NCBI GenBank assembly: GCA_030704615.1 | Contig: CM060731.1 | Span: forward strand, 3,348,001 to 3,412,000 | DNA length: 64,000 bases | DNA from: Takakia lepidozioides | Lineage: Eukaryota; Plantae; Bryophyta | Reading direction: 5' to 3' | In this document: positions 3,098-50,089 of the stretch, one piece after another | Numbering within the stretch: the first letter of the stretch is position 1 | Layout of the letters: every line of letters begins with the position of its first letter | Notes under the pieces: model-generated | Database searches by the model: none | What the model saw: only the letters and a program-made list of their open reading frames with translations | Told to the model about the DNA's origin: nothing | Made by a program: the position numbers and the translations under genes

Positions 3098-4400
3098 CTA
3101 CATAACATCATCAACTGATACTTCGTCATCCGTGTCATAAGCCTGTAATTCAGAGGCATACACATCCATGAAAGCCTCAACTCTACGCAACCTATCCACG
3201 GATTGTCCAACAATAGCTGCTCTTCGGTCAAACAACAGATCATTGGAAAGACCTACATCACGTTGTTGATGTATTGAATGCAAAGCTTGGGACTCGGCAT
3301 ACGAAGGTAGATAAAACGATGAAAGAGGACTTTGGGGTAGACTATCGTAGATGGTCCGCACAATCCCATCACTGCATCACACATACATGTATACTTATGT
3401 TAACAAATCAAATGGGAATGGTTTGCTTTGAGATTGCAATAAAGGGAATGGAGGCGAGACATACTCACTAGGAAGTACTGCCGAGATGAAGACCAAGCTT
3501 GCGCGCCACCTTAGGAGCGGGGGGTTCCAACAAACTCACAGGACGTTGAATGGTTGGAGTTACCGCAGATGCAACCAAAACGGGTTGAGTATTTTGAAGT
3601 GCAGAGAGACGTGCTGTATACAACGTCTGGTCCCCCTCAAGACCAAATACGTGACGTCCAGACTCGCGGGCAGCAATAAATGTAGAACCTGCAGGAAAAA
3701 AACATGCAATGATGATATTATATTGGATAACAGTTAATGATCAGGAATCAGCTCAGAAGATTTTAATTACAAAATGGAGACCAATGCAAACCTGTGCCAG
3801 CTGTGAGATCCAAAATGCGGGAGCCAGGAGGTGAGCATGTCTCCAACAACACTTGCATGAAACGGGACTACGGTCTCGCGCACCCCTCCAGGCTTGTTGA
3901 GGAGTTTGCATGGGTAGTGCAACATCTGGAATGTGGTTGTAGATGACATCCAACTCAACAGGGTCTGCAAGGGGGTCCACAACTTTGCCAGACTCACGCA
4001 GTTTGAACAGTCCTCCTTGCTTGGTGAGGACATGGGCGTGGAAGAACATGGTCTGTTAGACGTGCCATTTCCACAAAAACAGTGCACCCAGATGGTTTAA
4101 TAATATGTATGAGAGTAGGAAGATGAAACATCAAACAATGAGATATTGAAGAGGGATGATTTTTACCTTTCCTGTCTGAGTGTGTAGAGGGGTGGTATTG
4201 ATGCAAGTATATTTCCTTGATAATACGGAAATAGAGTTGCCCCTAGAGTAAGAAAAGAGCTCCAATGCAAAGAAATCATCGGAGCCCTGCAAGAACACCA
4301 AGCATCCATTGTCATCCAACAGGTCATTAGCAATGGAGAATGCATACTCCCAATACCGTTTATCACGCTATGGGTGCAGAAGAAGGTGATGAATGCAGAT
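3098..4400 (-). pseudogene. Degenerate spliced N6-adenine/N4-cytosine DNA methyltransferase-fold gene (copy 1, homologous to the MULE cargo gene at 42388-45771)
   Basis: GT-AG exons ~4400-4167, 4052-3792, 3688-3469 and 3371-3098 give RYWEYAFSIANDLLDDNGCLVFLQ / TMFFHAH..DVIYNH..WRGARDRSP(frameshift ~3862)FMQVLLETCSPPGSRILDLTAGTG / STFIAARESGRHVFGLEGD / PLSSFYLPSYAESQALH. These read as amino-MTase motifs X, I and II. Motif IV was not clearly recognisable. Confidence 0.75.
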
Positions 4401-5166
4401 CGAGGCATGCGACCAGCTTGATCGGAGAGAGGGCAATGAGTTTTGTACTATTTCACTCAAGAGGATCTGGTGATGCCATAACTGATCCTACTTTATGAAT
4501 CATTTGAGAGGTTGCCCTTTCGTCAGAGCATCTTTGGCACCTACGTTTGCGCAGTTATGAATAATATTTTGCTTGTTTCGGTCTGGCTGGGAAAGGATAG
4601 AAGCAGCCATGGCCCATTCGTCGTCTGCATCGACATGCTGGGTTGGCTGGTAAAATTCTGCAGCTTAGGGTTCCGACTGTTAATCTTGCCGTGGAATCAT
4701 CGAGTTCGCGTTACGTTCATGAGGTGGTGTTGTGCAGTTCATATGGAAGGCTTCTTCTGCGTTCAATTCATTCTGACGTGTTCGAATTAGCCTTTCCCTG
4801 CACACCGTATGCCTCCATGTGACCAAAATGATATCGAAAGGAAAAAGTAGAAGTAACTACACGGCTGTGGAGCTCGTTGATAAAGAAGTCTCGGGGTTAT
4901 GGACACTAATGAAGATGAACACAGCAACGTAGTCCATGAAAGAGACGCCCAGTCGTATGGAATCTCAAGAAGAGGTCCAGCTGCTAAGGACATCAAATTT
5001 GACGGCGTTATAGGCCCCCTCTACCCACCAACACATTCAAACAGAAGCAGACGAGTCATCCTTTCTTGCGAGTGCATTTTCTTCCTCCGCCATACGGGCA
5101 CCCCACTTTCAGCTGCAGAGTATGGAGGATATATTTACACAGTATCAAACAAGAACCCCTAGGCAA

Positions 5167-5400
5167 GCAAAAAATTTGAACTCTGTGACTGCCCCGCAGC
5201 TATTGATTATTCTTGAAGTGACAGTTCGTCCTAATCTCGCCTTGATTTCCTGTTAACACATGTGCTGATGTGAGCTTCAAGAAGCAAAAAATTTGAACTC
5301 TGTGACTGCCCAGCAGCTATTGATTATTCCTAAAGTGACAGTTCGTCCTAATCTCGCCTTGATTTCCTGTTAACACATTTGCGGATGTGAGCTTCAAGAA
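5167..5400. repeat. 117-bp tandem duplication covering the peroxidase 3' end
   Basis: 5167-5283 and 5284-5400 are near-identical, with AAG microhomology at the junctions. Confidence 0.95.
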
Positions 5401-6648
5401 GGCAGACGAGAAGGCTTGGTAGAAGCTATTTTCATCACCGGCAAAACCTGCCACAATGCCTGCTGTTCTCGGATCTTGGCCAAGCTCTGAGTCGATGGTG
5501 AAGAGGCCCCGCCCGTTCATAACATCTTGATAATACTGGTTGTCAAACACCAAGTTGGTGAGGTCCGTGGGGATGATGGTAAGGTTGGTCAATGATGATG
5601 TCAAGCAAGAAGCGCGCAGCTGACCACCAAATATCAAACCCAGTTGTGGATCACTCTCTGACAGCCGGTTCTGGACACTCACACAGTGCCCTACCCCAAT
5701 TGTGTGAGCCCCTGCAGCACCAGTTAGACAGCCAGCATATCAGCAAACTTATCTCCACTGCAGACCATAGGTGCAGGTTGAGGAAGATCGCAACAAGAAT
5801 CTAAATGATGATGCAAATCAAAATTTCATAGAATGTAACACCTCGCAGTTCATACCTAGGATAGCAACACTCTCTTCAAGGTTCATTCCAAAGGATTTAA
5901 AGACATCGATGAAACCGTCCACACTGACAGAAACTTTTGGCAATAGTGCATCCGCTCTCAAGTTGCTGCCAGTCGTAGCATCGCGACGCCCCAAGAGAAT
6001 TGGGAAGACTGGGCCTCCTGTGAAGGACACCGCATCCCGGCCTGCCATTGCAATTATGTCCGCACACGACACAGTGTTTGGACAAATGCTCTCCAGGACG
6101 CCCTTCACACGGTCAATAAACTCGAATCTTCGAACACCAAAATTGGAATCGGATACCATTTCACTTGTCATATCAGCGGTTGAATCCAGCATAATCGATG
6201 CATCACAGCCCTGCACACAACAGCGGATACCTGCACGTATTAAGGAACTGTTGGCAACTGTTACAAATATAGGGCATCTCAAGGCGTACGCGACGGAAAC
6301 TAGAGAGCTTGCTACTATACAGCACTGTGAGGGGCTTCAGCAAACTCTGAGCTCAAATGAGCTCTCCAATAGGCCCAGTGCAAGAAACGAAGAAGAAACT
6401 AATGCAGGGCCCGAGCAGGAGCACGCAGTTACCTGGACTCGACAGTCATGAAAGACCAGGCGAAGGAGGGCAGCAGGTGCAGTGGGGTCAGTTGCCAAGC
6501 TGGCATCTATAGTAGCCTTGGCCACGGATTCGGCCATGGAGCAGCTGTTGTTGTAGAACCCGAATTCTAGCTGACCCGTTGTTCGGCCCAAACTGAGTGT
6601 AATAACCACCACCACAAACAAAACTGTGGGCCATGCTTCTCTCAGCAT
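5317..6648 (-). CDS. Class III secretory heme peroxidase, ~321 aa; exons 6648-6433, 6210-5856, 5711-5317
   Basis: Signal peptide; distal motif LLRLVFHDCRVQ|GCDAS; VSCADII; GRRD; proximal G|AHTIGVGHC; FDNQYY; GEIRTNC. Two GT-AG introns with consistent phase. Confidence 0.95.
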
Positions 6649-9639
6649 TCTGTGAGTGGGAGTGTAACTCTGTCACCACGCCCTGAGAGAAGTTGGATAA
6701 TGTAGAGCAGCGTTCTAAGGGCTGAATGTCTCTCTGCTCTTTCGTGAAGGCCAAAGTGAGACGAATACTCCCTGCCACCTCTCTGCGACTGCTATGACCC
6801 CAACTAGACTTGCTCTCAGTCTCCGTGCAGGCAAAAGAAGTATGGTCGGCGTTTCTCTCCAGCCAGTCTCCAAACCAAGCCCAGCTTCTCCCTATGTCGC
6901 TCTCTCTCACAATGGCAGTGTACCTCAAGCTCTCTCTCTCTTCTGCCTCAATTTGTCCCGCCTGAAAGTAGAGAGACAAAGCTGGTGCTGAGGCAGTGAA
7001 TCAAAGACGTCCGACGGGAACTCGCGAGTGATCGTGGCGGGCACTTGCTCGACGATAATTGAAATGGGCATCATTAGCTTCCTAGAAATACTGAAGGAGA
7101 GCAGGTAGGTGTACTGAGTTGATAAGTACAGAGAGGGCTGCAGCTTTTGAACTTATTATCCCTCTTTAGATCTCTGTTTCCTCCCCATGTCAGTGCGCTG
7201 CATTGCTCGGTCTGTGGATGATGGCAAGAGGAGACGAACGCTATCTACTGCCCACCTCATTGTCCGCCTCGCCACACACTTCCCTGCAGCTCTTGCAGAT
7301 GTGCTGACACTCGAGGGCTTTCGCAAAGCGCAAGATATTCTTTCATCAGCAACGCCATCTAGGTACTCGATGCCAAGGACTTTACTCCCGTATTCATTGT
7401 GCACTTGCTGTAAGAATCTGACACTGCGCCTACCCCTGTCTGCTCTTCAACGACCCTTTACGTGTTGCCTAACGTTCAGTGACCAGCCTGAAGCTAGGTG
7501 ATGAGGTGAGCATGAAAAGAAATGTTTTTGAAAAGCGTGATGCAGTGATGCCATCACTGGGCTGCCACTGCGAGCTCGCCACTCTCGCATCCCTCTCCGA
7601 CCTGGCAAGGGGCTTTGCCTACACGTCTCAAACCGTTGGGATGCTCGTTGCTTCTTTAGTGACTCACTAGCAGAAGATCCTTACTATATACACAGTGTCA
7701 ACATGCTTCAGAAGCTCCATTGCTACAGACAAATTTGAGCTCATCACTTTATGTCACCCCTCTCAGCAATCCTTTCCTTTCCTGTGAGTATGTAATGGTA
7801 GTAGGCTACTCTGAATCCAAGCAACTTAAGAAGATTTGGATGAAAAGCATGAAAGGCTGTATATATTTTTCTTACAAAGTAGGGGCAGAGCCCAAAAACT
7901 TTCTTGGCTGGAGAGACCACGTGCCTTTCTCCTCGTGTACCTTCCCCAATAAATACTTGCCTGTGATGCAGTGTGAATGTGAAGTGGATCATTATTTTCC
8001 TTTGCAGTGGAGGCCTCCAGCCTCAATCATATATTTAGAGTTTCATCCATCTATCGTCATCCATATGGTGAGTGCTATGATATTCAGTTCCCTTCTTTTC
8101 TCATTTTTCTTTCTGAAAAGGAAGGGAGAATTCTTACCTCCTCAACTAAAACTAAAGTAAAATAAAACATGAGGCCTCCCGAAGGAGGCGTAAATCATGG
8201 TGTATTTTGACCCCGAAGACCGCTACCGCCCTTCAACAATGTAGTGAAGGCTTGGATAGGTGAATACCTGAACGAAAATGGACGCTTGAAAATGGATTAG
8301 TTTTGGAAAGACCCGTGCAATTGGAAGATATACACACCGGGTTATAGTGGTTGCATCATGCATGTGCACATGTGAACCTCTAGAGTCTACAAGTTGTCAT
8401 AATACATTAAAGGTGTGAAAATACAACAATTTGTGACCACAAGTTTGTAAACCAAGGCAGAATGTCAATGAAACAAAGGAAAATACCGGACATAAAGCTG
8501 TATGTCACAAAATGGACTTCAATCTTTAATATCAGCTGCTATGTAATTAGTTACACAAAGTGTGGGCTCTGGGGGTAGACCACATGACCATTCCTGGATC
8601 AGCCTCCATGGCCTTGTCACCTGAGGTTATTTTTTCCTCTATGTACTCTTTTGGGCTTTTAGTCCCTCTGCTATAAAATTTCAGGGCTTCTGTCCCCTTT
8701 CTTAAAATTAAGAATTAAAAAAATTAAGTTGGGTGATTGATTTGTTTGGTCGGTGGTTACTTGTTTGCAATTTTGTATCGGGGATTATTTGCTTGATTTT
8801 AGTAGAGAATGGGTCTATGATACACTCCGAGCCAATATTTAGGAACTTGTTTGTCGTCTTTAGATTATGTGGGATATATATGTATATATTCCCAATTGGT
8901 GTTGGATGCTATTTGGGGATATAGCTATGATAAAGGGCAGTCGTTTTGTTGTTATAAGGTCATCTCTTTATTTGTATATAATTCAAGCAGTAAAGGTTCA
9001 TTCACACCTGCCGATTGTGCATCACATGTTCAAGGCGTATCGTCACGGATTAGGGTTTCAACCTAGATTTTTTGTCACTACTTGCCTACACTACTTATCC
9101 ACTGCTACTCCTATTCATACTTAGGTGCAGTGGTACCCTACCATCATATGTACTAACCTGTCTGCTTGTGTTCATGGCTGTCTGGTGGAAAATAGTGAAG
9201 TACCTGCGACAAGATGAAGCACATGTGCGCACCTCTTTCTCGATGCATCAGGAAAATCCCTCGAACACAATCATGATGCAGTGAATCTGTCATTTTTCTT
9301 GCAGATTTAAGATCGTTTGTTCACCACCTTTAATTTGAGTGGTCCATTGTTGTGATCTACAGGAGTAATCAGTAGTTACAATCTGATTTCGAGCAAAAGT
9401 TTCACAAACATGAGGCCGTTGAAGGTGGTGGTGCTTGCACACTTCTTCCAGGTCATACTGCATGCGTATGAATCTCTATTGTCATGTTACGAGGATGAAA
9501 CGAACGCCATTATACCTGATATGCCACACATTCCAGAGCCACAAGACAATAGAATTGTTCTCTAGACGATGATCAACTCATTAGTGCTTCATCAAATATC
9601 GAATGTCTTGTGTATACGAGCTACTTTTGAACAGAAATT

Positions 9640-12018: not shown

Positions 12019-14960
12019 CTTCCAGCGATGCCTCTTCCTCGTGCTGGCACTGAAGCTCCTGATGCACTTGAGTCGTCATGGATCCCCTTGAGCTACAGTG
12101 TTTCGTGAAGCTCGGAGCTCAGAACGATAACGGCGGGAGAGAGATTGGTACTTTACTCATAACAGTTTCAAAATGCTAGTTTACCTCTGTTGATAGGATC
12201 ATAAATCTACAAAAATGGAAGATGGAGTGGCCCTGCTGATAGGCTTAACAACGGCGATAACAGTCGAGATAGGCTTGTGAATAAGCGGTGTCACGTCACT
12301 TACTTGTGGCGTGGTCTCAACGGAGGGAGTTATAATCAGGCTTACTAACGAACGTATCACAAGGTGTGAATGAACCTTAAGAGAGGAAAGAAATAAGTTA
12401 CTATAGTCAATTTGCAGTCAAGGGTCAAGTGGCTTATGAGTAGCTTAAGTAGTATGGAGGTTTTGGTTTTAGCCACTAGTAATGCAATTAAGTGTAGGTG
12501 GACACTGTACAAATCACCAAGATCGTACTGTAGACTATGTCAACGTGGTCTTGGTATATGACATAGGTACGTTATGTAATGGGATGTTGTGAGAAATGAT
12601 GTTTGTTGAGGTTTAACATAGATATGAAATGTTGGCAGGATGCTTATGGCTCCTATATTTTGATTGGTTGTTGTATATAATATTTAGTATAGATTATTGG
12701 GATTAATACAGTGTGTTGTGTGGTGATGGAAGTGAACTTTATTGCGTCAAGGGCATTATTGGGGAAGAGATACCAATTGGGGCCTCAAAAAAGAAAGATG
12801 ACATAGTTGTTATCGTCAAAAGAGAATTTACCGCATAAATTATATCAATATTGGTAAGTAAAAAATATGAGTGCTCAATTTACAATATGGTGTGCCAGAA
12901 TACCTTATGGTTAATCTTAGTACTGTGGTTAGGTTTGAAGGGAGACTTATGGATAGCAGACATGTATCAAAGGGGACTAGGTCCTCATTCATGTTTTGAA
13001 ATAGGTGGGGATGTACAGTGGCGGAAGGCCAGCTCTCGAACATGTATTGTGACTCTCAATGTGGTGATTGAGAAGGAGCAATGAAATTTGTGAAAGACGA
13101 TTGTGGTAAATGTAGCATACGATGCAGCTTATGACAAGCATTTGATCGGTCCAAGAAGAGAGTGCTGATGTTTTATTAGCGGTCGCTTCAATCGCATTAG
13201 ATTGCCTTCCGTTTTTCAGATTTCAATTTTTTCATTCAGTTCTGTCGACTTCCATTATCTTCAGTTCCCATTAGATCTATGCAAGTTTTTTTTGGTGTAG
13301 TTGTTTTTAAGTTTTCTTTAGTTGTTTTTAACTTGAGGAGGGGATAGAGGCCCTTGAAATTTATTAAAGGGAAAAAAAAATCCCATAGGGCCATAAGGCA
13401 AACAAACGAAGCACTAAGGGCAAACTCGAGAGAACAACAAAGGTGGTCAATTGGGGAAGACAAATGTAGAGCTCTGTGAGGCCCTTAAAAGAGGTCCATC
13501 GAGTGGTGTGATGATAAAACAGCTATAAGTGGCAATGTTCGAAATGACCAGAAGCAACAATTAGTAATAAAGAGACGTGTTAGTTGGAGTAGCTGTTAGG
13601 AAAAAGCCGTTAGCATGTGTTCTATGTCGCTAGCAGCGCGGTGCGTTTGGGGCCTAAGCATGATAGCATGATAGCAATTCTAACGATCAAAGCTAAGTCT
13701 GGTCGATTGTGATAATTTGCCTATGTGCTTCCAGTTGATTTCACGGGCGAGATAAAGAAGCGTCGAGTAGATGTCTTCCAACTGGAAGCGGGTCGTGCCA
13801 AACAGATGAGGATGGTGCAGCACTTGTGCACATGAGATTCTCTTCTCCATGAGGCCTCAAAACATTTGTGGATGCTATGTTGTTCCATTATATTCACTTC
13901 CCATTCCTTCAGTTTATTTTTCCATGGATGTTTTGTTTGAGTGACTATATGCCCAAAAATATTGAGAGTCAAGTTTATTGTGTTGTGATATGTCTAACAA
14001 ATTATTTGCACATATCAATAATTATATGGTCTAATATAATGGACATGTTACAATTATATTTCATTAAATACATTTATATCTTGTCTTCTTTATGAAGCCC
14101 AATATTTCTATCTTACAATATTACAAGAGAACATTTTACAATATAGTTCTTTATTCACAAGACAATGGACAGATGCCCCAGTCGCCAAAGCCAAAAATGT
14201 ATATATTGAACTACGATTGAATCGTACTGGACTGATCATTAATCAATATTTATTGTTCTTAAACTACATTGATCATTTTTCATGTATATATATGAAGTCA
14301 TTACGCGATCCTAGTCATTAGTTTGGGATTATTTGAGGGGAAAATAGATCAAAACCCTTGGTAAGCCATAATGTACTCACATTGAAACAACGAAGGATGA
14401 AGAAAACGCTAAAGAAATTTTTATCCATGAAAACTAATGTTATAATAGGTAAGATACATGGAATACCGCCTCAAGAAAATTGAAATACAACATCTAATTA
14501 CATTGTGGAGTTTGAACAACATGCATGATAAATGGATGTTGATGTGCCTAGCCTTGTAGCGACACAAAAATATGGCCGACGGATCCAACACTTCCATCCA
14601 TATTTTATCGACAATTTAAGCAAATTAATATTTGTCACATCATTCAGATAAGTAACTACCCCACCATTAACCCAATTTGTTGTAACAACCTACAAGCCAT
14701 CGTACAAACTATTACATAGTTATATGTTGAAATTGTGAGAGGTTTAATGTTGATATTTCATCTTAATTTAAGCCGGCAAGGTGTACTCCGATCATAGTAC
14801 ACCAAAGTTCTCTCCATACATCATCTAGATCCAGACACATGGGAGCTAAGTGTACCTTGGTATTTTAGTTTGTCAATCGGATCATATGACCATCGCCCTA
14901 TCATCAACTATTCCTAAATAGATTCATCCAAATATTTGTGAGACAATGATCATAAACTCT

Positions 14961-40445: not shown

Positions 40446-42387
40446 ACATAATTCGCTTACCACATCTGGTACAGTAGATAGAGCAAGTTCATGCAGGGAG
40501 TCACCGCCGAATTACTTAAAATCTCCTCGTAGCATTGCCGTAAAATCTAGAAATTTCCTTAGGAGTGTTTTGTTGTAAAGAAAATAAATATTCGGCACTT
40601 CACTACCGGATCAGCCTGCCAAGTACGGTAGTCCTTGTTTTTGCCCATAATACGGGTATTGGATGGGTATTGCCAGCCGGTCCGGTTATTAACCCTAGTA
40701 TTGGAACTGCAAATGCCAGCCGGGTCGATTATTAACCATAGTATTACAATAGCCAATACCGGGTAGGTTATTCACACTACAAGATATGAGCGTTTTAGGA
40801 CTACGACTTTGGCGGAGTCATAAAAACTGCACTAGGTAAACGACTACAGAGCGTTGAAATGCGTTGCAGTCATAGTTTTATGACTCTATAGTAATGGATA
40901 TCACTACATAACTTTTTTTTTTAAAAAAAAAAATTGCTAATAAGGTTGTAATCGTGAATAGAGAAGAGGGCTGGGACTTCGCGTTTTTTTGTCTCCTGCG
41001 CCACAGCACGTAGCCGAGGGATGGAACGCGATGATAGCAGGATATGCAGGGGCGTGGGATGGAGGCGTTGAGCAAATGATGCAAGAAAGAAAAGAGGAGG
41101 AGGAGACGAGACGAGACGAGACGAGGAGAAGCGAGCTCGCCGTTCTTGGGAGAGTCAGCTTGGTCTTAGCAGGCATGTTTCAATCTCTGCCTACTCAGCT
41201 GCACCATAGTGGTTTGATCTCACATACCAACAGACACAAGCAGCACACACAAGAGGTCATTTTGGGTTGATGGTCGGTCAAATCCTCTATTGGTCAGGAC
41301 ACGAGGTCAAGGACAATGTGGTGAGGGCACCTTCTTCTTCAACCTATTTTAGCCTGTGTTGCCCTCTCATCGGACTCGGCCGCAAGATGCATATTGAATT
41401 CTATAAGTTAGGTCGTTGGGTAGATCTGTGGTGGTTTGGAGTGACTTTGGCAAGTTACTGCCAGTGTGGCAGCAAGGAAGTATCTAAAAACATATAACAG
41501 AGGTGAGGAGAAGCTTTGGGGTGAACACTTTCCGACCCCAGTCAATGGTGGGACAATGGAGACAAAAAGGTGAATGCCTGTTGGATTACAGAGAGAAGCA
41601 GATGCATTTTAGATTGTGATAAGTAGGGTTGGGGTGTTTTGGGAAAGAACTCCACACCAGTATGGTTACAGGGATGCCTCGGCGTGAGCCTAGTCACGTG
41701 AGCGCGTGAGCGCAACTGCGCTCACGCCACGTCACCTTGCGCAAATGCCACGTCACGTTGCGCAAATGCCACGTCACGGGGCTCACTCCACGTCATCACA
41801 CGTGAAGGCCGCGTCACCACGCGCCCAGAAAGAAGTGGAGTGTATTCCCGCGGATTGGCACCCTTTACCGCGGAAACAAGCTGGACGACATAATAAAAGG
41901 CATTGAATAAAGGATGGATGAATGTACAGTTGGATGATAAACAGATGGATGAGTGTGAAAAATAAATGTAGATGGATGAATGAGGGATGGATAAGAGTAA
42001 AATGGATGAATGTATAATGGATGTTGAGCAATGACAAAAATTCATGACAGGAAGATGCATGACCAAAACTTTTGACAAATGCACAACGTATATGAAATGA
42101 GTGTGGAAGGTTTGTGGGGTGGATTAAAGAGTACAGAGGATGAATGTACAATGGATGTTGAACAAAGGAAAAAATTCATGAATGGAGCACGCATGAATAC
42201 ACTGTAGATGAATGCACAATGGATATGAGAAGAGTCAGGGAGGTTTGTGAGATGGATTCATACATATTGCAATTTAAATGAAAGTTGATTATGTGATTAT
42301 TATTTGTTCTAAAGGAACAACTACGGTGGAGGAAGGGGATTCAACGTTTTCCAGATAGTATGAAAATGAATATTAAAAGAATACAGT

Positions 42388-45300
42388 TCAGTCTGACTCA
42401 GAGTCAGTACAATGTATCCCCGCTTCCTCTGCATCTAAGTCTATGTATTTTAGAACACCGGATCCACGCTGGATACACCTACGGCTGGCCACTAAAAGTC
42501 AGGGGATAGGGACTCGGCCGCGTGAAGTGCTATTGCTTCGGCATAAACAGGAAGCAGAAAATTGGAAAGGGGGTTGTTGAAAACAGACTCGCCAGAAATG
42601 ACTGTATCTCCTGAAGATCCACCGCTGCCTTTCCTGAAAGACAGCCTGAAAAAGTTATTACTGTAACTTTGATGTTATTGAGAAATTGAGTATGACTCCC
42701 AAAGAGGGTTTAGCACTTACTCACATGAAAAGTCGTTGTCGACCTGCTTATCTTCGGGATCGTCATCATTTCGAATTTGAATCCGATCAGTCTATGTGCC
42801 TGAAGTGGAGCCAGACAAAAGGGGGAGGAGCACTGTGTTGTAGAGGTCAGAATCACCCTCCATGCCAAAAAGGCTTCTTCCGCCTGTCTTGCATGCATGG
42901 TAAGTTGCTCCTGCACCACACAGGAGGACATGAACAGTTTGGTGGGGGGGATTTAAGCAGATGAAACTGTTGAAAGAAAACCAATTCGGAAGGGAAAGAA
43001 CGAACCTGTGGATACAGAAAGATCGACCACCCGTGCAGAGCGGTGGCTGCATGATTCCAGCAGTATTTGCATGAACGCTGGGGACTTTTCCTTTGCACCT
43101 CTCCAGGGAGTGCCATCTGGTCTCTTCAGAGTCTGACTGGACTGCATGAAGTTGTACAAAATGTCATCGACATGGGGCTCATAGGGGGGGTTGACGAAAC
43201 AACCCTGGTCAAAAATCTCAAAGCTGCGGATGGAGGATGGTGTCTTTGAGGTGCGAATCCTCCGCAGGCAGATCGCCTCGAACATCCTCGTCTGCCAAAG
43301 ATAGCAGGTTAGTGTGGTAAACACAATGTATAGTAGAACTATGTACATCGGCTATTCAGAACTCAGACACAAAAAAATCATTTTTATCACGAATCGGTGA
43401 TGATCGTTGTCGATCATAACAGATTCTACTAGAGTGGAGCTGCAGAGAACATTGAAACTCATCATGAAAGCACAAGCAGAAGGGAGACGACATACCAGCT
43501 GACCAGGGAAACCCCCTTTCACAAGGTAGAGGCTGTTCACATAATTCCATGTGCGCAAAACTTCAAACCTTGAAGACTTGAGGTATGATGCCAATGCCCG
43601 ATGACTATCATTGTCACATGACTGAAAAAGCAAAAGTGTCCCTGCATCAGAGAGGAAGTTATTACAGAACCCGAATACCCAACTCTAGTAGTTGTCCTCG
43701 AATTTGTTCCAGCCTGGCGTCTTGCCCTTTGGAAGAACTTCTGGCACAGCCTGGCCATCCGGAATGTCGAGAATGACAATGTCGGCCACATAAGTTTTCT
43801 GCACACCGCACACGAAGGTGGGACCTGTGCTCACCTGCAACATACATGTTTTTTATAAGAACGAAAGCAAGAATGTTTTCAAAGAACGAGACTGAAATAC
43901 TGCCAACGAAACTTTCAGAGAAAAAGGAAAGAAACTGGAATTCTCACCAGATTGAGGAATGAGATTATATTGTCCCAGGTAGGCGATGGCACCCCAGTGT
44001 ATCCTCTCTTTCGACTCTGCATCATTGACAGCCAACCCTCATTAACAATTTTCATCTCTCCTGCCGAATCAGAACGGGAAGGGTGTGGCTTGGCATCGAA
44101 CACGCACTGAACAGTGCGGGTATATCTTCCAGTAGTAAAGTCCTGCGCACTCTCCATCTCCTTTTCTTTCTCATTCCCCTTGTCTTTTTCCTTCTCTTTG
44201 GACTTGTCTTTGTCATTTGGCTTTGCTGGTGAGATGGCTATGACATCAACAGCCTTGTCTTTTGGTTTGCGGCCCGCCTTCTTTCCCTTCTGCGGCGTTC
44301 CCTGAGCATCAGGCTCCTTGGCAGCCAATGTTGCTATGTTTCGTTGGTACTCTTCGTCAATCAAAGGCGCCAGCATCTCAGCGTTATTGTTCAAGTATTT
44401 CATATGTTATTCTTGAAAGATCGTGTGCTCCGGTGGGCAGTCAAGGTACCACCCACAGTCTCTGAAGTGAGAAGGACTCCAGTCGTTCAATATCCCTGCA
44501 GTATACATGGTTGGATCGTTTGCAGGGTCCGACCACATGTCAAGATAGTCTGGAATTCCGCTCAGGTGATTTCCTTCCATAAGCACATATTTCGTGTACC
44601 TGAAAAAAGGAGATAAATCCCAACCCACAAAAGCGCTCAGTGAGTAAGATGCAAGTAGAACAGAATGAAAAAAACATAGATTGAAATGGCTCTGAGAACT
44701 GCTCCAAGGACCTTTCAGGACCACACGAATGCTCCAGATGTGAATGTCGTCAACGCCATTCAAAACATTCCATTCAATGATACTGTAAATACACCCTAAT
44801 CCAGGTGAATGCAAACTATCGTTTTGGAATGACACAGACATAGAAGTGAATGTCGTCAACGACATTCACTAATCAATCCTAATTATTCCTCAAATGAAGC
44901 AAAATCACAGGATGGAAATCATAAACTCGAGTAAGGAACCCTCCAGGAAAACTCAATGCACATTCATAACGAACATATCACTGAGGACCTCACAACAACA
45001 CTGTATGTGAATGGCGTCAACGCCATTCACAAAAATACCAACAAGGAACCAATTACTTAGCTCCCAATCCATGTAAATTCAAATTGTCGCTGTTGAATAA
45101 TACAGACACAGAAGTGAATGTCGTCAACGACATTCACTTTGGATTTCTCATAACAGAGCTTATCAAGCCTCCAGATTCCTCGCAAGAGGCAAAAACAATG
45201 CAGAACAACTGAATGTCTGCATTGACATTCAGCAATATGAAGTGAGGAACCCTCACTGTAACCTCTATGGACATTACAAAAATTTACATAACTCTGAGGA

Positions 45301-45771
45301 CCTCTCAACAACTCCGGATGTGAATGTCGTCAACGCCATTCAAGGACATTATCAATTCTAATCAGGGACACTATAATTACACCCTTAGATCCTAACCAGG
45401 TGAATTCATATACTCGCTTAAGAATGACTCAGACAAAGAAGTGAATGTCGTCAACGACATTCAATCTGGATCTATGATTGCAATCCTTATGAAGCCACAT
45501 TTTTTCCCAAAAAAAACAGTAGAGTTTCAAGTATGACATTGCACCTGTACACAACTCGCATCATGGCCCACTCTCCTCCAACCTGACTGTCAAAGTCGTT
45601 GGACGGTAAAATGTTACCATCTTTGGAGAACTTCCGGAAAAAACAGTATCTCCAGGTGAGACCTCTCCACTTCCTTATGTATGCCTCCAATGACATTTGG
45701 GGAGGGGAAACAATCGAAATGTTCAGGTCCTTCAAAGTCTGATCCAGCACAATGACGACGCGCTTTTCGAG
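42388..45771 (-). pseudogene. Spliced beta-class N6-adenine/N4-cytosine DNA methyltransferase-fold gene inside the MULE (copy 2), with nonsense mutations and the 5' end missing
   Basis: Exons 45771-45583 (tentative), 44599-43948, 43834-43496, 43291-43006, 42910-~42725 and ~42645-42388. Motif IV-like ADIVILDIPDG (DIPD at 43757-43768), then FLSDAGTLLLF, then WRGAKEKSPAFMQILLESCSHRSARVVDLSVSTG|ATYHACKTGGRSLFGMEGD (motifs X, I, II). In-frame stops at 44407, 43685 and 42792. Confidence 0.8.
44740..45464. repeat. Array of six 24-bp palindromes GTGAATGTCGT-CA-ACGACATTCAC plus one variant
   Basis: Copies start at 44740, 44846, 45007, 45114, 45320 and 45441. A variant CTGAATGTC-N6-GACATTCAG is at 45209-45232. 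Confidence 0.95.
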
Positions 45772-45844
45772 CTGCAAATTGTATATTTGTCAGAATTGCA
45801 AATAAGATACTCATCACATACTTGAAGAGAAGAAAACGGCATGT

Positions 45845-48017
45845 TTGAATACACACCTGCCAGGTCAAGGTGCCATCAAAGTTTTTCTTTTCAAAATGTC
45901 GACTGTTGGGGAGGGCAGTGGGGTTAGCCTCGTGAAGCGGATGCAGAAGACTGAGGACTTGCAGAACTGTTTTCTTATGTTTGATCATGTGAAACGAGTG
46001 AAGGATTGGACAACAATGGCTTGTCATGTCTACGATCCAGTGTACCAACGAGTTATGACAATTGCAGTTTGTGACATGCAATCCAAGGATACGGAATCCC
46101 AGAAGCTCATGTGGAATTCCCTGATACGTGTCATGGGCTGCCATCTCCAAATTTCGCAGGTTTCATGGCGGATAGTGCTCAAGCAAATTTCAATGCTGTT
46201 CGTATTGTCTTCGGATCGGGCGACCCAAAAGTTCCAATGCGAGGAAGAGAGCGTACATGTCTATTCCATTGGACACAATCTCTGGAAAAACATACAAAGT
46301 CGGACATCAAACCAGAGATGCAGACTCAGCACCGTAAATTGTGCAAAGAGTACAAAGATGCTAGAACAATGAAGGAGGCGGACACTTTGTTCCAGACAAT
46401 TCGTGCCTAGTGGTTCTCTTCTGGAGCTGCATCACTTGAGAGTATGAGAGCATTGGAAGATTGGCTGGCGTTTTGGCACTTCCGGTATAGACAGTGGGGA
46501 GCAGCCATGCCATTGGTACGAGGCTTATATTTATTGTTTTTTCATACATTTGTTTTCCATTTTATTGTGTCCTCGCTTTCTTTATGTTGTTTTCTGTTCA
46601 CTGTTTTGAAGTGTGGTTCTGCACTTTGCAGAACATGTCCATTGAGGAAATGGCGGACATGCCATCTTGCAATTTGGCAGAAACTGTGCACAACGCATGA
46701 TTGCAGCAGTCTGGGAAACGAGGTCGGGATTTGTATGTGGCAACAACAGATGATTTGATATGTGCCTTGCAACAACAAACCCGATACTGTGATTTCATAC
46801 GAGGTGGGGTTGGTGGCAAGGGTCCGGACAAATGGGAGTTGATGTTGCGTGCTGCAAACAGATCTGGGGATCCAATCAAGATAGCACGGGCGGTGAGCAT
46901 GTATGCCCAGGGAACGCCATTTGTTTCTAGAGTTCCACATCTTGAAGGGGAGGAGAGATTCGGCTCCTGTAAGAGGAAATTGAACACTCCACCTGGTTCG
47001 GATTCAGATTCCCACAGGGCAGACCGTGATAACTTCTCGAAGCCTCGTGTTCCCCTGCATGATAGCTCCATGTCCGGAACCTCCATTGTGGAGGAACCTC
47101 CAACACGACGGCAAACTCCAGCATCAAACAGTGCCACTGAAATGGTGCAGGAGAGAAACAACCCCCTTGATGTGCTTGAGTCCGCATGCCCCGACCACGT
47201 TTGGCACATAGAACGCACAAGTGTAGGGTCTCATGTGAAATGTACAGCGATCAGGGCAACTAATTTCGAGAAGTGCACTTCATCTATATCCAGAGGTGGT
47301 GCCCGAACTCCTACTCCGACTTTCACGGGCTTGATGCGTCCATACGGTCAACCAGAAGCCAAGAACCACAAGTTCTGGTTCTGCGCAGATGATTGTGCCA
47401 GATGTGTGCATGGAACTGTGCGTCCTTCCGTAGTGATGAAGCCATCTCCTCCAACCGTTTGGCCCATGAAGGTGGGAACACATCTCAGCTTTCGGGAGAT
47501 TGAAATGCTGGAGGAGGCAGGTTTTTCCCTTGCGAGACAACCCCAACTCCATGCATGTGCTACTACTTCTGCGTCCTCCCGGGTCCCCCCGACAAATCTT
47601 GACTTGTGGCCAACCAAACGAGATGGAAAGCTCGTTCGGTGTTTCCCTCCAACCGCTGAACACTTTGGCAAAGTGGAGTCCGCAAGAATGCTCCAAGCTC
47701 GTGTTGGAAGCACCACGGAAGTATCTGATCCAGGATATGGTCGGGTATTCACAATCATCACTTCCACATCTGCTGTTCATGACAGGACCTACGACATCAC
47801 GGTTTCCAATTTCCCCAATTGCATATGTCCTGATTTTGTGAATATGCTATCAACCAGTTTGGGCAAGAGAGGTAAATTCATACCCTGCAAACATTTGTAT
47901 TTCATATTTTTGAAGAGGATGGTTTGCGATCCCAAACGTGACAACTTCATTCACCAGGCCACTATGAGTTTCAACGAGGTCGATACTCTTTTGCAGCGGG
48001 ATACAACACATGGGTAG
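45845..48017 (+). pseudogene. MULE DDE transposase with a C-terminal SWIM zinc finger, 5'-truncated and disabled
   Basis: Candidate catalytic residues in MFDHV (D), FMADSAQAN (D) and CNLAETVHN (E); the MULE CxxH signature RTCLFHW; SWIM CICPDF...CKH. Intron 46516-46631; frameshift ~46137; TGG-derived stops at 46388 and 46698. Confidence 0.85.
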
Positions 48018-48659
48018 CATCAACTATGCAATGTGGTATGTGGACGACCATGATTTGAAATGTGTAATTCACATCAATTCGTCGGCGGTGCAATGATATG
48101 GCCTCCAACTATACGGAGTGAGCTCTGAGTGACAACTTTTAGGTAGTGCACATTTGTCATTGCACCGTTCGAAGTCTACATGTCTTGCTGTCGCTATGCA
48201 CTACAATCATCTTTTGAAGATGATCCTAACTCTCATTGTTATTTGAGGAGGGAGGAAGGTCTTCCCGTGGCAGTCTTTATGGCGCACACTTTGTGAGGAT
48301 ATTTTTTCGTCCTCGTAATTGTAAAAGTGAAACAAGCATTTGTAATTGCACAATGTTGGATGGTGCAATTGTAGGCCTCAACGCTCGTCTTGATTATATT
48401 TAGGCAAGATTCCCTGCATTAATTCCACGGTCATAGGACCATCCACGGTTATAGGCGGCGCATATTAATGCTGACGTGGCAGATGACGGACAATGTCACA
48501 TCATCATTTACCGCCACATCAGCATGCTGACATGACGCTCACGCCACGTCAGCGTGTGTGCAGGCTCACGCCACGTCACTCCGGCGTGAGCGTACGCTCG
48601 CGCGGTCACGCCATTGCGTCGTTGGTATGGTTAGGGTGTTTGCTGGTAGAATTCTAGGT

Positions 48660-49290
48660 TGTCAGAGGCATGGATAGCTGAAGGAGCAGGGATAGAGTGT
48701 GGGTCAAGATTCATCCAAGAGGGCTGGATTTCAAGCTCCACATTACCTATGATTCCATGTGGAAGGATAGCTACAAGAAACCTACATGGGTAGATGGTCA
48801 ACTGGTAGCGGCAGCAGCAGCGGCACAATTGATAAAGTCAGGCACTTCTACTGAAGGCACCTCCTTCAACACATTTCACCTGTTTTTCCCTCTTATCAGA
48901 ATCGGCCCTAAATTTCCATGTTGAATTCTACAAGTTAGCTGGTTGAGTGAATCTAGTTTGGAGTGAGTTTGACATGATACTGCCAATGTGACAATAGGAA
49001 AGACGCAATTTAGTATAGGAACTAGTGTCATAAGCTGAGTTGGGTGTCTAGGCTGTTATTGTCAGCTGCTAGCAGCAAGACAAGGATGAATGCATGATTT
49101 GTGCAGACACATTGATAGCTGAAGGAGCAGGGATAGAGAGTGGGTACAGATTCTTCCAAGAGGGCCAGATTTCAAGCACAAGATTACCTATGATTCCCTG
49201 TGGATCAATAGCCACAAGAAACCTGCATGGGTAGATGGTCAACTAAAGGCAGTAGCTGTAGCGGCATAGTTGATAAAACCAGGCATCTCA
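48660..49290 (+). repeat. Diverged ~190-bp direct repeat pair (~48665-48845 and ~49105-49285)
   Basis: Both copies share GATAGCTGAAGGAGCAGGGATAGAG...ATTACCTATGATTCC...ATGGGTAGATGGTCAACT...TTGATAAA. Confidence 0.8.
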
Positions 49291-49349: not shown

Positions 49350-50089
49350 CACTTATGGGCATGTGAAAATGCTTTGTGAGGCAGGCAAACTGACAGAGGC
49401 TCTACAGACTTTAAACCAAGGAGGCATTTCAAGGTGAAAAGTCTGTCTCTTGCATAAGTGCATCAAGGTGAAAGGCCTAGAAGCTGAAAAGCAAGTGCAA
49501 ACTCACATTATCCATAGTGGATTCACACCAAATGTTTTTCTCCTCAACACCCTTGTCAACATGTATGTTAAGTGCGGGAGCATCATGGATGCTCACCAAG
49601 TGTTCAACAGAATGCCTCAACGATCTCCTGTGCAAGCCTGGCAGCTCTGGAAAAGGGCAAAGAGGTGCATGGTGCAATCGTCAGAGCTGGAATCGTACTA
49701 GATGTGATCCTGAACAATATGGCTAAACAAAATGTGGTATCGTGGAGTGCGATGCTCGAAGGGTATGCACAGCAGGGGCGCGGGATGGAGGTTTTGGACA
49801 CGTATGAGCAATGATGTGTGAAGGGATGAAGCCCGACCACATCACATTTGTGTGCATTTGCAGTGCGTGTGCAAGCCTGGCAGGCTTGGAAAAGGGCAAA
49901 GAGGTGCATGGCGACATCGTCAGAGCTGGAATCGTACCAGATGTGATCCTGAACACTGCCATGGTGGACATGTATGCCAAATGTGGGAGCATCGAGGATG
50001 CAAAGGGAGTGTTGAACAATATGGCTGAACGAAATGTGGTGTCGTGGAGTGCGATGCTCGCAGGGAATGCATCTCTCCGACAATGGTAG
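49350..50089 (+). pseudogene. PLS-class pentatricopeptide repeat (PPR) gene remnant
   Basis: GFTPNVFLLNTLVNMYVKCGSIMDAHQVF, NVVSWSAMLEGYAQQG, PDHITFVCICSACASLAGLEKGKEVH and NTAMVDMYAKCGSIEDA, broken by deletions and frameshifts. Confidence 0.9.

Follow-up and report, generated by a model that had tools for sequence, protein, structure and literature searches.

Palindrome Arrays That Differ between Lineages in a Plant Mutator-Like Element with a ParB- and Methylase-Like Accessory Gene

Results

An intron of a Mutator-like element in Takakia lepidozioides contains an array of 24-bp palindromes that are more conserved than the DNA between them, and related elements contain dyad repeats of their own. 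The sites differ in sequence from one element lineage to another, and they keep their symmetry through changes on both arms. Judging from these sequences and by analogy, the explanation that we favor, and that we regard as quite possible though short of probable, is that the palindromes are cis-acting dyad recognition sites, similar to the targets of VANC, which co-diversify with a DNA-binding protein encoded by the element. Together with the accessory gene described below, the palindrome arrays appear to form a new system by which a transposon recognizes itself.

The element and its transposase

The window (the whole stretch of 64,000 nucleotides that we analyzed) contains one internally deleted copy of the element. 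Here and below, features are unstranded unless a strand is given.

41669–48624: Mutator-like element, internally deleted (non-autonomous) copy of 6,956 bp with a 9-bp target-site duplication (TSD) and short imperfect putative TIRs
41660–41668: TSD, left copy, GTATGGTTA, 9 bp, a perfect match to 48625–48633
48625–48633: TSD, right copy, GTATGGTTA, 9 bp, perfect
41704–41727: left subterminal palindrome, GCGTGAGCGCA-AC-TGCGCTCACGC, 24 bp, not a member of the intronic palindrome family
48583–48604: right subterminal palindrome, imperfect, the partner of 41704–41727
45857–48017, plus strand: transposase remnant, N-terminal approximately 450 residues absent, frameshift near 46140

The perfect 9-bp TSD on both flanks is of the MULE type (about 9 bp, range 8–11). 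The putative TIRs (CAGGGATGCC.. versus the reverse complement CAACGACGCA..) are alike at 14 of 21 positions over approximately 21 bp, and one subterminal palindrome is common to each end; the left boundary of the element carries an uncertainty of approximately 30 bp. The insertion site lies within a tandem repeat of approximately 440 bp. The C-terminal ORF of the transposase (46701–48017; 438 amino acids) is intact and has a SWIM-type signature (CxC..CxH), the C-terminal zinc-finger signature C-x-C .. C-K-H being seen in the window ORF and in the related elements L001 and L003. The Pfam SWIM model gives no matches on the transposase ORFs, and the 438-aa ORF has no exact entry on record. The MULE-type DDE domain (PF10551) likewise has no Pfam match up to an E-value of 10, but inspection by eye shows the order D .. 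D .. C-x-x-H together with an N-terminal Cys/His-rich region, both in keeping with the superfamily. The window copy has neither the N-terminal half of the transposase nor the ParB-like exon of the accessory gene.

Conserved palindromes in the window

The palindromes of the array are listed here with the tandem units that contain them.

44690–45530: three diverged tandem units of approximately 270–310 bp each, with one A-type and one B-type palindrome per unit
44740–44763: palindrome A1, 2 mismatches (G1/A24, T8/C17)
44846–44869: palindrome B1, perfect
45007–45030: palindrome A2, perfect, G..C variant
45114–45137: palindrome B2, perfect, symmetry reaching 13-bp arms
45209–45232: seventh, diverged palindrome of 24 nt with 9-bp arms, a 6-nt center, an outermost pair C:G rather than G:C, and both CpGs lost
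45320–45343: palindrome A3, 2 mismatches (G1/A24, T8/C17), same sequence as A1
45441–45464: palindrome B3, 1 mismatch

An earlier note on this DNA had described six copies in three pairs and a seventh variant at 45209 with 9-bp arms and the same 24-nt length, and both descriptions are correct. In the 64-kb window the motif pattern matches exactly at 44740, 44846, 45007, 45114, 45320, and 45441, with start-to-start distances of 106, 107, and 121 bp within pairs, against no match in 100 shuffles of the window. The rest of the 64-kb window has no extra copies or isolated half-sites. The palindromes have 11-bp arms around a 2-nt nonsymmetric center (CA) and fold into a 10-bp stem capped by a 4-nt loop. 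The note had also described the spacers as homologous and much more diverged than the palindromes. This holds as well: between tandem units the palindromes are 94–100% identical, while the spacers and flanks are 42–73% identical, which argues for a role as dyad recognition sites. The retention of CpGs that it reported is complete. The six copies still have all 12 of their CpGs, which represent 12 of the 19 CpGs of the array on 23% of its bases; the observed/expected CpG ratio is 0.52 in the window and 0.69 in the element. One claim needs correction in part. The copy at 45007 (A2) is a perfect palindrome and differs from the B-type copies in both arms, as stated, but a single substitution separates it from the A-type homologues (T..C), and within the window it therefore reflects one event.

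The imperfect copies A1 and A3 are identical and yet fold weakly (−3.9 kcal/mol, z = −0.9), so conservation is independent of hairpin strength. The mismatches (7 GT versus 13 AC) have no wobble bias on either strand. Since, in addition, the sites share no single transcription context, a role at the DNA level is favored.

Other readings of the array were considered. A CRISPR-like array of interspaced repeats was ruled out, the spacers being mutually homologous as tandem-repeat units rather than unique. Rfam at gathering thresholds finds only a tRNA in the whole window, and the snoRNA and miRNA readings were dropped when a permissive Rfam scan of 44400–45700 gave nothing relevant. In a metagenome scan the window palindrome occurs as eight single sites on unrelated contigs with no element homology, and the scan gave no more copies of the exact family.

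The accessory gene

The array lies in an intron of a second gene of the element, which runs on the minus strand.

44600–45544, minus strand: array-bearing GT-AG intron of 945 nt, supported by splice signals and frame continuity, with flanking exons homologous to L001
43945–44599, minus strand: accessory-gene exons downstream of the array intron (tblastx to L001 163–770), with an in-frame stop near 44404
45545–45789, minus strand: accessory-gene exon (middle region) upstream of the intron (tblastx to L001 1839–2006; weak tblastn match to P0213 residues 138–187)
42816–43798, minus strand: beta-class (N6_N4) DNA-methylase-like domain (tblastn of P0226, P0222, and P0178), with in-frame stops and DIPDG at the motif-IV position

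The GT donor is at 45544, a polypyrimidine tract and AG acceptor are at 44600, and the reading frame runs on across the splice junction, in agreement with the earlier placement of the array in noncoding or intronic sequence. An internal deletion truncates the gene 5′ of the 45545–45789 exon.

The accessory gene encodes a ParB/sulfiredoxin (Srx)-like domain and a beta-class DNA-methylase-like domain, a combination resembling bacterial ParB plus DNA methylase. Both domains are found in a single gene in the full-length element on L018+L008. In the ParB/Srx-like domain, the G-N-H of a DGNHR motif is invariant, and the D and R nearly so, among 42 sequences; the nearest relatives by this domain are P0043 and P0044. 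Its AF2 model has a pLDDT of 88, and in a Foldseek search against the PDB nearly all of the top approximately 46 matches belong to the ParB/Srx superfamily (Noc, Srx, ParB, KorB, and others), although these fold matches are weak (E-value 0.06–1, TM 0.3–0.6). The domain has no match to Pfam ParBc. In the middle region of the protein we suspect a helix-turn-helix from a conserved helix-like pattern in a thin alignment. Neither the window element nor the full-length one on L018+L008 has an ORF for a ParA-type ATPase, and Pfam finds nothing in either.

The gene had been called an “MTase” gene, and an NPPY motif had been noted in the window. A beta-class methylase-like domain is indeed there, but the NPPY motif is absent from the 58 relatives of that ORF, which were found by exhaustive search only. 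For the window NPPY ORF itself, Pfam (including PF01555), PDB, and word searches are all blank. Its relatives match PF01555 just below the cut-off (E-value 7.6e-6; 26.5 bits against 26.7), PADLOC MTase_II (8.7e-8), and an NCBIfam methyltransferase model (1.2e-5); DpnA and M.RsrI are their best matches in a PDB profile search. The matched part is the AdoMet-binding C-terminal segment (motif I region) of beta-class methylases. As aligned, the catalytic motif IV, (D/N/S)PP(Y/F/W), appears to be absent. The aligned position reads DIPDG in the window and DIPEG, DAPEG, or DCPEN elsewhere, i.e., D-x-P-E/D-G/N with the aromatic residue missing (window, P0226, P0213, and L018), and the glycine-rich AdoMet loop is degenerate (S-T-G). 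These features suggest that the domain probably no longer methylates. The AF2 model of the methylase-like domain (pLDDT 67, pTM 0.38) was set aside, its template ORF reading through introns.

Related elements carry their own dyads

Five related elements from public assemblies each have their own dyad repeat of 12–50 bp, in several copies and always in noncoding DNA of the element (L001: 16 copies; L003: 3; L007: 3; L008/L018: 4; L009: 6; all above shuffles). Dyads are found in the upstream regions of the two divergent genes, within introns of one gene or the other, and beyond the 3′ end of the transposase gene. In L001, the closest relative, the array is in the homologous intron, with seven palindromes between the same two exons. 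The window and L001 introns cannot be aligned apart from an 8-bp core, CGTYRACG; the arms are wholly different and still complementary. The core is found in all six window sites (0.56 expected by chance) and in eight sites of L001 (0.26 expected), and its central hexamer varies as GTYRAC only. Other lineages have different cores (CGGYRCCG, TCGGATCCGA). The array belongs to the Mutator-like element itself and keeps its position there among relatives, rather than being an unrelated nested repeat, the other outcome that the earlier note had considered. We read this positional homology, the kept core, and the presence of a multi-copy dyad in every sampled lineage as further arguments for dyad recognition sites.

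The symmetry of some relatives is longer. In L003 and L008 it extends over approximately 50 bp, and the outer arms vary between copies yet remain complementary; stems in L001, L003, and L008 reach 19–25 bp, with z-scores of −6 to −10. In one alignment (A5), double changes affect 12 of 24 pairs; shuffles give a covariation score of 0.165 ± 0.029, and 1 of 500 reached the 0.264 observed. In another (A3), there are 13 cells with double changes versus 6.0 ± 2.1. The covariation control leaves the relatedness among tandem copies in. The contigs of L003 and L007 end too soon to cover any accessory gene. In L001, a 42-bp tandem array with one palindrome per unit, five in all, also lies approximately 200 bp past the transposase stop codon and is possibly subterminal. 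The terminal palindromes of L008, like those of the window element, differ in sequence from the internal dyads. At the termini of the full-length L018+L008 element we see one candidate 9-bp duplication and weak inverted ends.

Discussion

What may read the palindromes?

We infer that the palindromes are bound by a protein, most likely a sequence-specific DNA-binding protein that is encoded by the element and acts as a symmetric dimer. The sites would be kept by selection in noncoding DNA of the element, i.e., in the accessory-gene intron and the divergent upstream region, and for some lineages in the transposase intron and 3′ flank as well, and their sequence would change along with the element lineage. 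Our favored candidate for the reader is the accessory protein, with its ParB/Srx-like domain, conserved middle region, and methylase-like domain. Its binding may tag cognate copies, as VANC does VANDAL copies, for regulatory effects such as anti-silencing or autoregulation. The window copy has neither the ParB-like exon nor an N-terminal transposase half and would depend on protein supplied in trans. The presence of a conserved accessory gene and the VANDAL precedent (PMC5735166) are reasons for this preference. Against it counts that the ParB-like exon is missing from the window copy. The earlier note had proposed dyad sites for a dimeric element-encoded protein; the conservation and the lineage pattern support this in part, but a simple dimer site does not explain symmetry of approximately 50 bp with compensated outer arms. 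Such symmetry is longer than that of typical dimer sites; hairpins and cruciforms would be expected to show it.

It is possible, though we doubt it, that the palindromes work in folded form, as RNA hairpins (in the pre-mRNA of the accessory gene or transposase, or in UTRs) or as extruded DNA hairpins or cruciforms that are read by shape. Splicing or stability could then be under their control, or they could bring in a factor that recognizes structure, for example the ParB-like nuclease-type domain. The window array is intronic and hence transcribed with the gene, the long stems fit, and arms that are wholly different between lineages have kept their complementarity; it is the copy-specific compensated outer arms that keep hairpins or cruciforms in contention, and RNA hairpins had already been named as an alternative in the earlier note. 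However, two of the six copies in the window fold poorly as hairpins though their sequence is perfectly conserved, and within a lineage the arm sequence itself is conserved beyond pairing. Wobble bias is absent for both strands, no Rfam family matches, sites in divergent upstream regions and 3′ flanks have no evident common transcript, and the covariation scores retain the kinship among tandem copies. The compensated arms have another potential source. The array might be an ordinary internal tandem repeat with no function, its copies alike by gene conversion and perfected by intrastrand template switching (quasipalindrome correction). Template switching yields apparent compensation and outward growth of the arms without selection, fitting the copy-specific symmetric outer arms, and tandem repeats evolve in concert. 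We nevertheless find this quite unlikely. It leaves unexplained the survival of the 8-bp core between window and L001 in an otherwise unalignable intron, the multi-copy dyads in the same element parts of all six lineages, the stop of conservation at the palindrome edge, and the imperfect copies that remain imperfect and identical.

Two further accounts keep a protein reader and assign it differently. The palindromes might be bound by the N-terminal zinc-finger region of the transposase and act, within the element, as enhancers or regulatory sites either of transposition or of the transcription that the transposase drives from cognate copies. MULE transposases are reported to be able to activate transcription of cognate copies sequence-specifically (bioRxiv 10.64898/2026.08.24.746577). 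The ends of the window element bear a 24-bp palindrome of like format, and the palindrome cluster of L001 adjoins the 3′ end of the transposase gene, which suggests a possible role in transposition and counts against our preferred reading. In the window copy, however, the termini have no half-sites of the intronic palindromes at or near them and carry a different palindrome, so the intronic palindromes are not transposase end sites there; since the terminal palindromes of L008 differ as well, we consider binding by the transposase rather unlikely. As for the suggestion in the earlier note that an active DNA methyltransferase encoded by the element methylates the core (GTCAAC and two flanking CpGs), we consider it very improbable. 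The methylase-like domain is of a class that usually recognizes short palindromes, the central hexamer is always GTYRAC in the window and L001, and the two flanking CpGs are kept in all six copies. Yet an active methylase aimed at the core is unlikely because NPPY is not conserved and the motif-IV position reads DIPDG; the AdoMet loop is degenerate, the variation in GTYRAC is that expected from CpG deamination of GTCGAC, and the cores of other lineages are unlike.

Comparison with known systems

The VANDAL MULEs of Arabidopsis have an anti-silencing protein, VANC, and arrays of its target motifs (PMC5735166, PMC10398659). These arrays are lineage-specific, lie in tandem repeats in MULE introns and upstream regions, and are bound by the accessory protein (PMC5735166); the motifs are 9-nt long, asymmetric, densely packed, and in a single orientation (PMC5735166, PMC10398659). 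Our element resembles VANDAL in being a Mutator-like element with an accessory gene adjoining the transposase gene, with short motifs in noncoding tandem repeats (accessory-gene intron, upstream of the transposase) that vary among related lineages and turn over by gain and loss of repeats. The VANC-like arrays that the earlier note had proposed are in this respect well matched by lineage-specific palindromes in tandem repeats, introns, and upstream regions. The likeness does not extend to the accessory protein, which is set apart from VANC by its ParB/Srx-like and methylase-like domain content. The sites are also of another kind, dyads of 12–50 bp spaced 70–560 bp, and any protein binding or hypomethylation at them is putative.

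A second comparison is with the bacterial ParB family. Its members act at palindromic sites, as in ParB-parS, SopB-sopC (F), KorB-OB (RK2), Noc-NBS, and VirB; sopC consists of 43-bp repeats, and fusions of a ParB-like domain to a beta-class methylase are common in phages and plasmids. Shared with these systems are a D-G-x-H-R type motif in a ParB/Srx-fold domain and clustered, multi-copy, lineage-specific palindromes, and the 42-bp tandem array of L001, with one palindrome per unit, recalls sopC. Unlike them, the element has a eukaryotic host, its ParA partner was not found, its fold matches are weak, and its sites can be much longer than parS. We offer, as speculation that is on balance doubtful, the proposal that a plant MULE family captured a bacterial/phage-type ParB-methylase gene, which would now be a catalytically silent, sequence-specific factor reading parS-like arrays in its own element. 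The element would then hold a eukaryotic module for self-recognition resembling ParB/parS (or KorB or VirB), which diversifies together with each transposon lineage and governs how cognate copies are expressed or packaged in chromatin. Our literature search found no paper on plant Mutator elements with a ParB-like gene, an absence that is not proof.

TnpA of En/Spm (CACTA) binds 12-bp subterminal motifs that are partly inverted dimers, and its binding is coupled to regulation and epigenetic state. That system is like ours in having an element-encoded regulator (here proposed) and repeated internal motifs, some in inverted pairs (bioRxiv 10.64898/2026.08.24.746577). It differs in superfamily and protein, and its motifs are subterminal, whereas the arrays here occupy central positions, and the ends of the window copy have none.

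If the palindromes are indeed read by the accessory protein, the element would be a second, mechanistically independent transposon with a private recognition code plus reader, VANC in VANDAL being the first, and self-recognition systems of transposons would have originated repeatedly. There would then be a eukaryotic role for a ParB-methylase-type protein of prokaryotic ancestry. The lineages would also provide natural orthogonal protein-palindrome pairs, one site per lineage, for studies of how specificity and target co-evolve, and possibly for tethering factors to chosen sequences. The compensated symmetry of up to 50 bp, for its part, raises the question of whether plant DNA transposons make use of cruciforms or hairpins.

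Structure of the palindrome array

The pattern described in the earlier note matches the window exactly at 44740, 44846, 45007, 45114, 45320 and 45441, and has no match in any shuffled window. In every copy, arms of 11 bp stand on each side of the two-base centre CA; symmetry is complete in three of the six, broken by a single mismatch in one and by two mismatches in each of the other two. The array consists of three diverged tandem units (approximately 270–310 bp each), and the pairing described in the note is borne out, each unit having one A-type copy (44740, 45007, 45320) and one B-type copy (44846, 45114, 45441) at a spacing of 106–121 bp. The palindromes are indeed better kept than the spacers (94–100% identity between units versus 63–73% for the within-pair spacer); the outer flanks between units are 42–66% identical. 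CpG retention also holds, with 12 of 12 present across the six copies, which contain 12 of the 19 CpGs of the array, in a genome with clear CpG depletion (observed/expected = 0.52). The proposed seventh variant at 45209 is real, a diverged copy whose outermost pair is C:G where the other copies have G:C. The copy at 45007 had been said to differ in both arms while remaining a perfect palindrome. It is perfect and both arms are unlike those of the B copies, but it is only one position away from its A-type homologues, and the change is therefore a single event within the window.

Each A-type copy has a second, short palindrome (GAGGACCTC or TGAGGACCTCA) approximately 20 bp upstream (44715–44740, 44980–45000, 45293–45312), which is degenerate in unit 1. 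A non-symmetric conserved block, CAGACAnAGAA, immediately precedes each B-type copy.

The transposon and its accessory gene

Features of the transposon holding the array
41660–41668 and 48625–48633: perfect 9-bp target-site duplication GTATGGTTA, flanking the transposon
41704–41727 and 48583–48604: subterminal palindromes, one per element end, same 24-bp format, arms GCGTGAGCG..
45857–48017, plus strand: transposase part, C-terminal two thirds, order D..D..CxxH, C-terminal CxC..CxH signature

The element is Mutator-like by its 9-bp duplication and transposase layout, with short, imperfect terminal inverted repeats; a Pfam search did not recognise the window transposase. The subterminal palindromes are unrelated in sequence to the intronic ones, and the motifs GGCGTGAGC and CCACGTCA are repeated around them. 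The insertion site is an approximately 440-bp tandem repeat (41322–41471, 48659–49285). Because the target has a near-duplicate (GTAGGGTTGGGGTGTTT at 41623–41639 versus GTATGGTTAGGGTGTTT at 48625–48641), the left boundary is uncertain by approximately 30 bp. Long low-complexity ORFs in the left subterminal part are due to an internal tandem repeat (41981–42258; approximately 132-bp period, 77% identity). Relative to L001, the contig with the nearest related element, the window copy has lost approximately 4.5 kb, and with it the ParB-like exon, half of the transposase (the N-terminal one) and the palindrome cluster upstream; this makes it a non-autonomous derivative. L001, the "full" relative, may itself be defective, because an in-frame stop at 2353–2358 splits its two accessory-gene ORFs; a relative protein, P0213, reads through there. 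A literature search, with repeat libraries such as Repbase outside its scope, found no published description of the family.

The accessory gene is on the minus strand. As the note had allowed, the array is intronic: it lies in a 945-nt intron (44600–45544) with a GT donor, a polypyrimidine tract and an AG acceptor, across which the frame is continuous, and the exons on both sides are homologous to exons of L001. In L001, L008 and L009 the gene opens with a conserved domain of approximately 190 residues, whose DGNHR motif has an invariant G-N-H and a nearly invariant D and R in an alignment of 42 sequences. Among more than 180 relatives of this domain, none has a Pfam assignment. Its AlphaFold model is confident (pLDDT 88), and of the approximately 46 top-ranking PDB matches in Foldseek, nearly all are members of the ParB/sulfiredoxin superfamily (including Noc, Srx, ParB, KorB, SerK, SbnI and PadC), with weak scores (E 0.06–1). 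The predicted fold thus suggests, as a remote assignment, that the N-terminal domain is ParB/Srx-like.

The ORF taken in the note for a methylase (42953–43348, minus strand) is without a match in Pfam, the PDB or a word search, and an exhaustive search found 58 relatives. Their conserved block is the C-terminal AdoMet-binding segment of beta-class N6/N4 methylases: the relatives reach 26.5 bits against PF01555 (cut-off 26.7), they match PADLOC MTase_II (8.7e-8) and NCBIfam methyltransferase models, and the best PDB matches of the profile are DpnA and M.RsrI. What remains of the proposed methylase is a remote beta-class methylase-like segment; the NPPY offered as its motif is not conserved among the 58 relatives, and the position aligned with catalytic motif IV is non-canonical (DIPDG in the window; DIPEG, DAPEG and DCPEN in relatives). 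This equivalence comes from sequence alignment, the structure model of the domain being poor. Since the position is of D-x-P type, the domain is probably not an active amino-methyltransferase. In P0213 the methylase-like domain shares a single ORF with the middle region. A full-length element is seen on the merged contigs L018 and L008: one strand encodes the methylase-like domain, followed by the middle region and the ParB-like domain; next comes a palindrome array, and then the transposase, which is on the opposite strand.

Palindromes in related lineages

We compared the window with five related lineages, several of them from short or cut contigs, and dyad counts exceed all shuffles in every one.

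Dyads in the window and in related elements
Window: GTGAATGKCGT-CA-ACGMCATTCAM, 24 bp; 6 copies and 1 variant; accessory-gene intron
L001: core GCGTTGACGC, approximately 30 bp; 16 copies; homologous intron (7), immediately upstream of the accessory gene (4), past the transposase gene (5, in a 42-bp tandem array)
L003: AAAACCTGTGCGG-YR-CCGCACAGGTTTT; 3 copies; upstream of the transposase gene
L007: CTGTCGGATCCGACAG; 3 copies; upstream of the transposase gene
L008/L018: CCGTCGGATCCGACGG; 4 copies; upstream of the transposase gene, in units of approximately 500–560 bp
L009: TTCGGYRCCGAA; 6 copies, among them one immediately upstream of the transposase gene and another in the gap between its two ORFs (presumed intron)

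The transposase genes of the window and L001 share approximately 73% nucleotide identity. Between their arrays, the 8-bp core CGTYRACG is the only alignable part, and the arms have been exchanged on both sides with complementarity kept.

The five L001 copies past the transposase gene form a strict 42-bp tandem array at 8811–9016, approximately 200 bp past the transposase stop codon (the contig ends at 9055); in them, symmetric changes have turned the CpGs into TG..CA (GTGTYRACAC). L008 has a further palindrome family, AATTTGGGA..TCCCAAATT, at 25–50 and 12064–12089; one copy falls within the accessory-gene region and the other approximately 800 bp beyond the full-length element's transposase gene.

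Proposed recognition of the palindromes

What might read these sites? Short palindromes are typical targets of beta-class methylases and of ParB-family proteins. Tentatively, the arrays may well be cis-acting dyad sites with which an element-encoded protein that reads them co-diversifies. The reader we favour would be the accessory ParB/Srx-plus-methylase-like protein, as a conserved, family-specific partner; that the palindromes are a true methylation target is scarcely credible. Binding by the transposase is clearly unlikely: the window element ends have no half-site of the intronic palindrome and bear a different palindrome, which argues against end recognition by this protein. Sequence recognition is favoured by arms that are conserved as sequence within one lineage, by half-site position 8, where T and G occur in every combination, by the two imperfect A copies of the window, which are mutually identical despite poor folding (-3.9 kcal/mol, z = -0.9), and by the L001 mismatches, which have no wobble bias toward either strand. 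Moreover, no one transcript would cover all the sites, which are spread over upstream regions, 3' flanks and the introns of either gene.

These observations weigh against a hairpin or cruciform function, which we consider possible but rather unlikely. Symmetry as such is favoured by the dyads of L003 and L008, which span approximately 50 bp (23/26 and 22/26 positions paired) and whose outer arms vary among copies of one array, yet are compensated. Two alignments of palindrome copies were tested for compensated changes. In A5, double changes occur in 12 of 24 pairs, and the score of 0.264 (versus 0.165 ± 0.029) was reached in 1 of 500 shuffles; in A3, 13 cells have double changes versus 6.0 ± 2.1. 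Because the shuffle controls leave in the relatedness of tandem copies, these figures are supportive rather than decisive. Symmetry of this kind may reflect selection for a hairpin or cruciform. Alternatively, it may be the work of intrastrand template switching, a process that makes palindromes longer and more perfect in the absence of selection. This process also speaks for a neutral repeat whose form is due to palindrome-perfecting mutation, a very unlikely account of the arrays.

The VANC targets of VANDAL elements are described as motifs that differ between lineages and have been multiplied in tandem repeats, both within the intron of the accessory gene and upstream of the transposase; the present family has lineage-specific motifs as tandem repeats at the same two locations (PMC5735166). 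The analogy with VANC drawn in the note therefore holds for location and lineage pattern but not for membership: the accessory protein appears unrelated to VANC, and long dyads stand here in place of densely packed 9-nt direct motifs. By this analogy, we take the arrays to work like the VANC/VANDAL system without being a member of it.

Other features of the window and contigs

3550–4091, minus strand: second, isolated fragment of the methylase-like domain, motif I more canonical (LDLTAGTG)
5317–5682, minus strand: class III peroxidase C-terminus, a gene fragment adjoining the fragment at 3550–4091
5165–5398: 117-bp tandem duplication (96% identity), which overlaps the C-terminal end of the peroxidase-like ORF and lies at and just downstream of its 3' end
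49450–50100, plus strand: PLS-type PPR (pentatricopeptide-repeat) sequence, just right of the element
61429–61500, plus strand: tRNA-Trp (CCA), the sole Rfam or ARAGORN match in the window

No transposase, ParB-like sequence or palindromes were found near the fragment at 3550–4091. The PPR sequence is split over several frames and is thus probably a pseudogene or intron-containing. Together with the peroxidase C-terminus, it marks the window as land-plant DNA. In L018, a copia-type reverse transcriptase fragment (RVT_2; 13458–13988) adjoins the full-length element, so this contig also comes from a transposon-rich eukaryotic genome.
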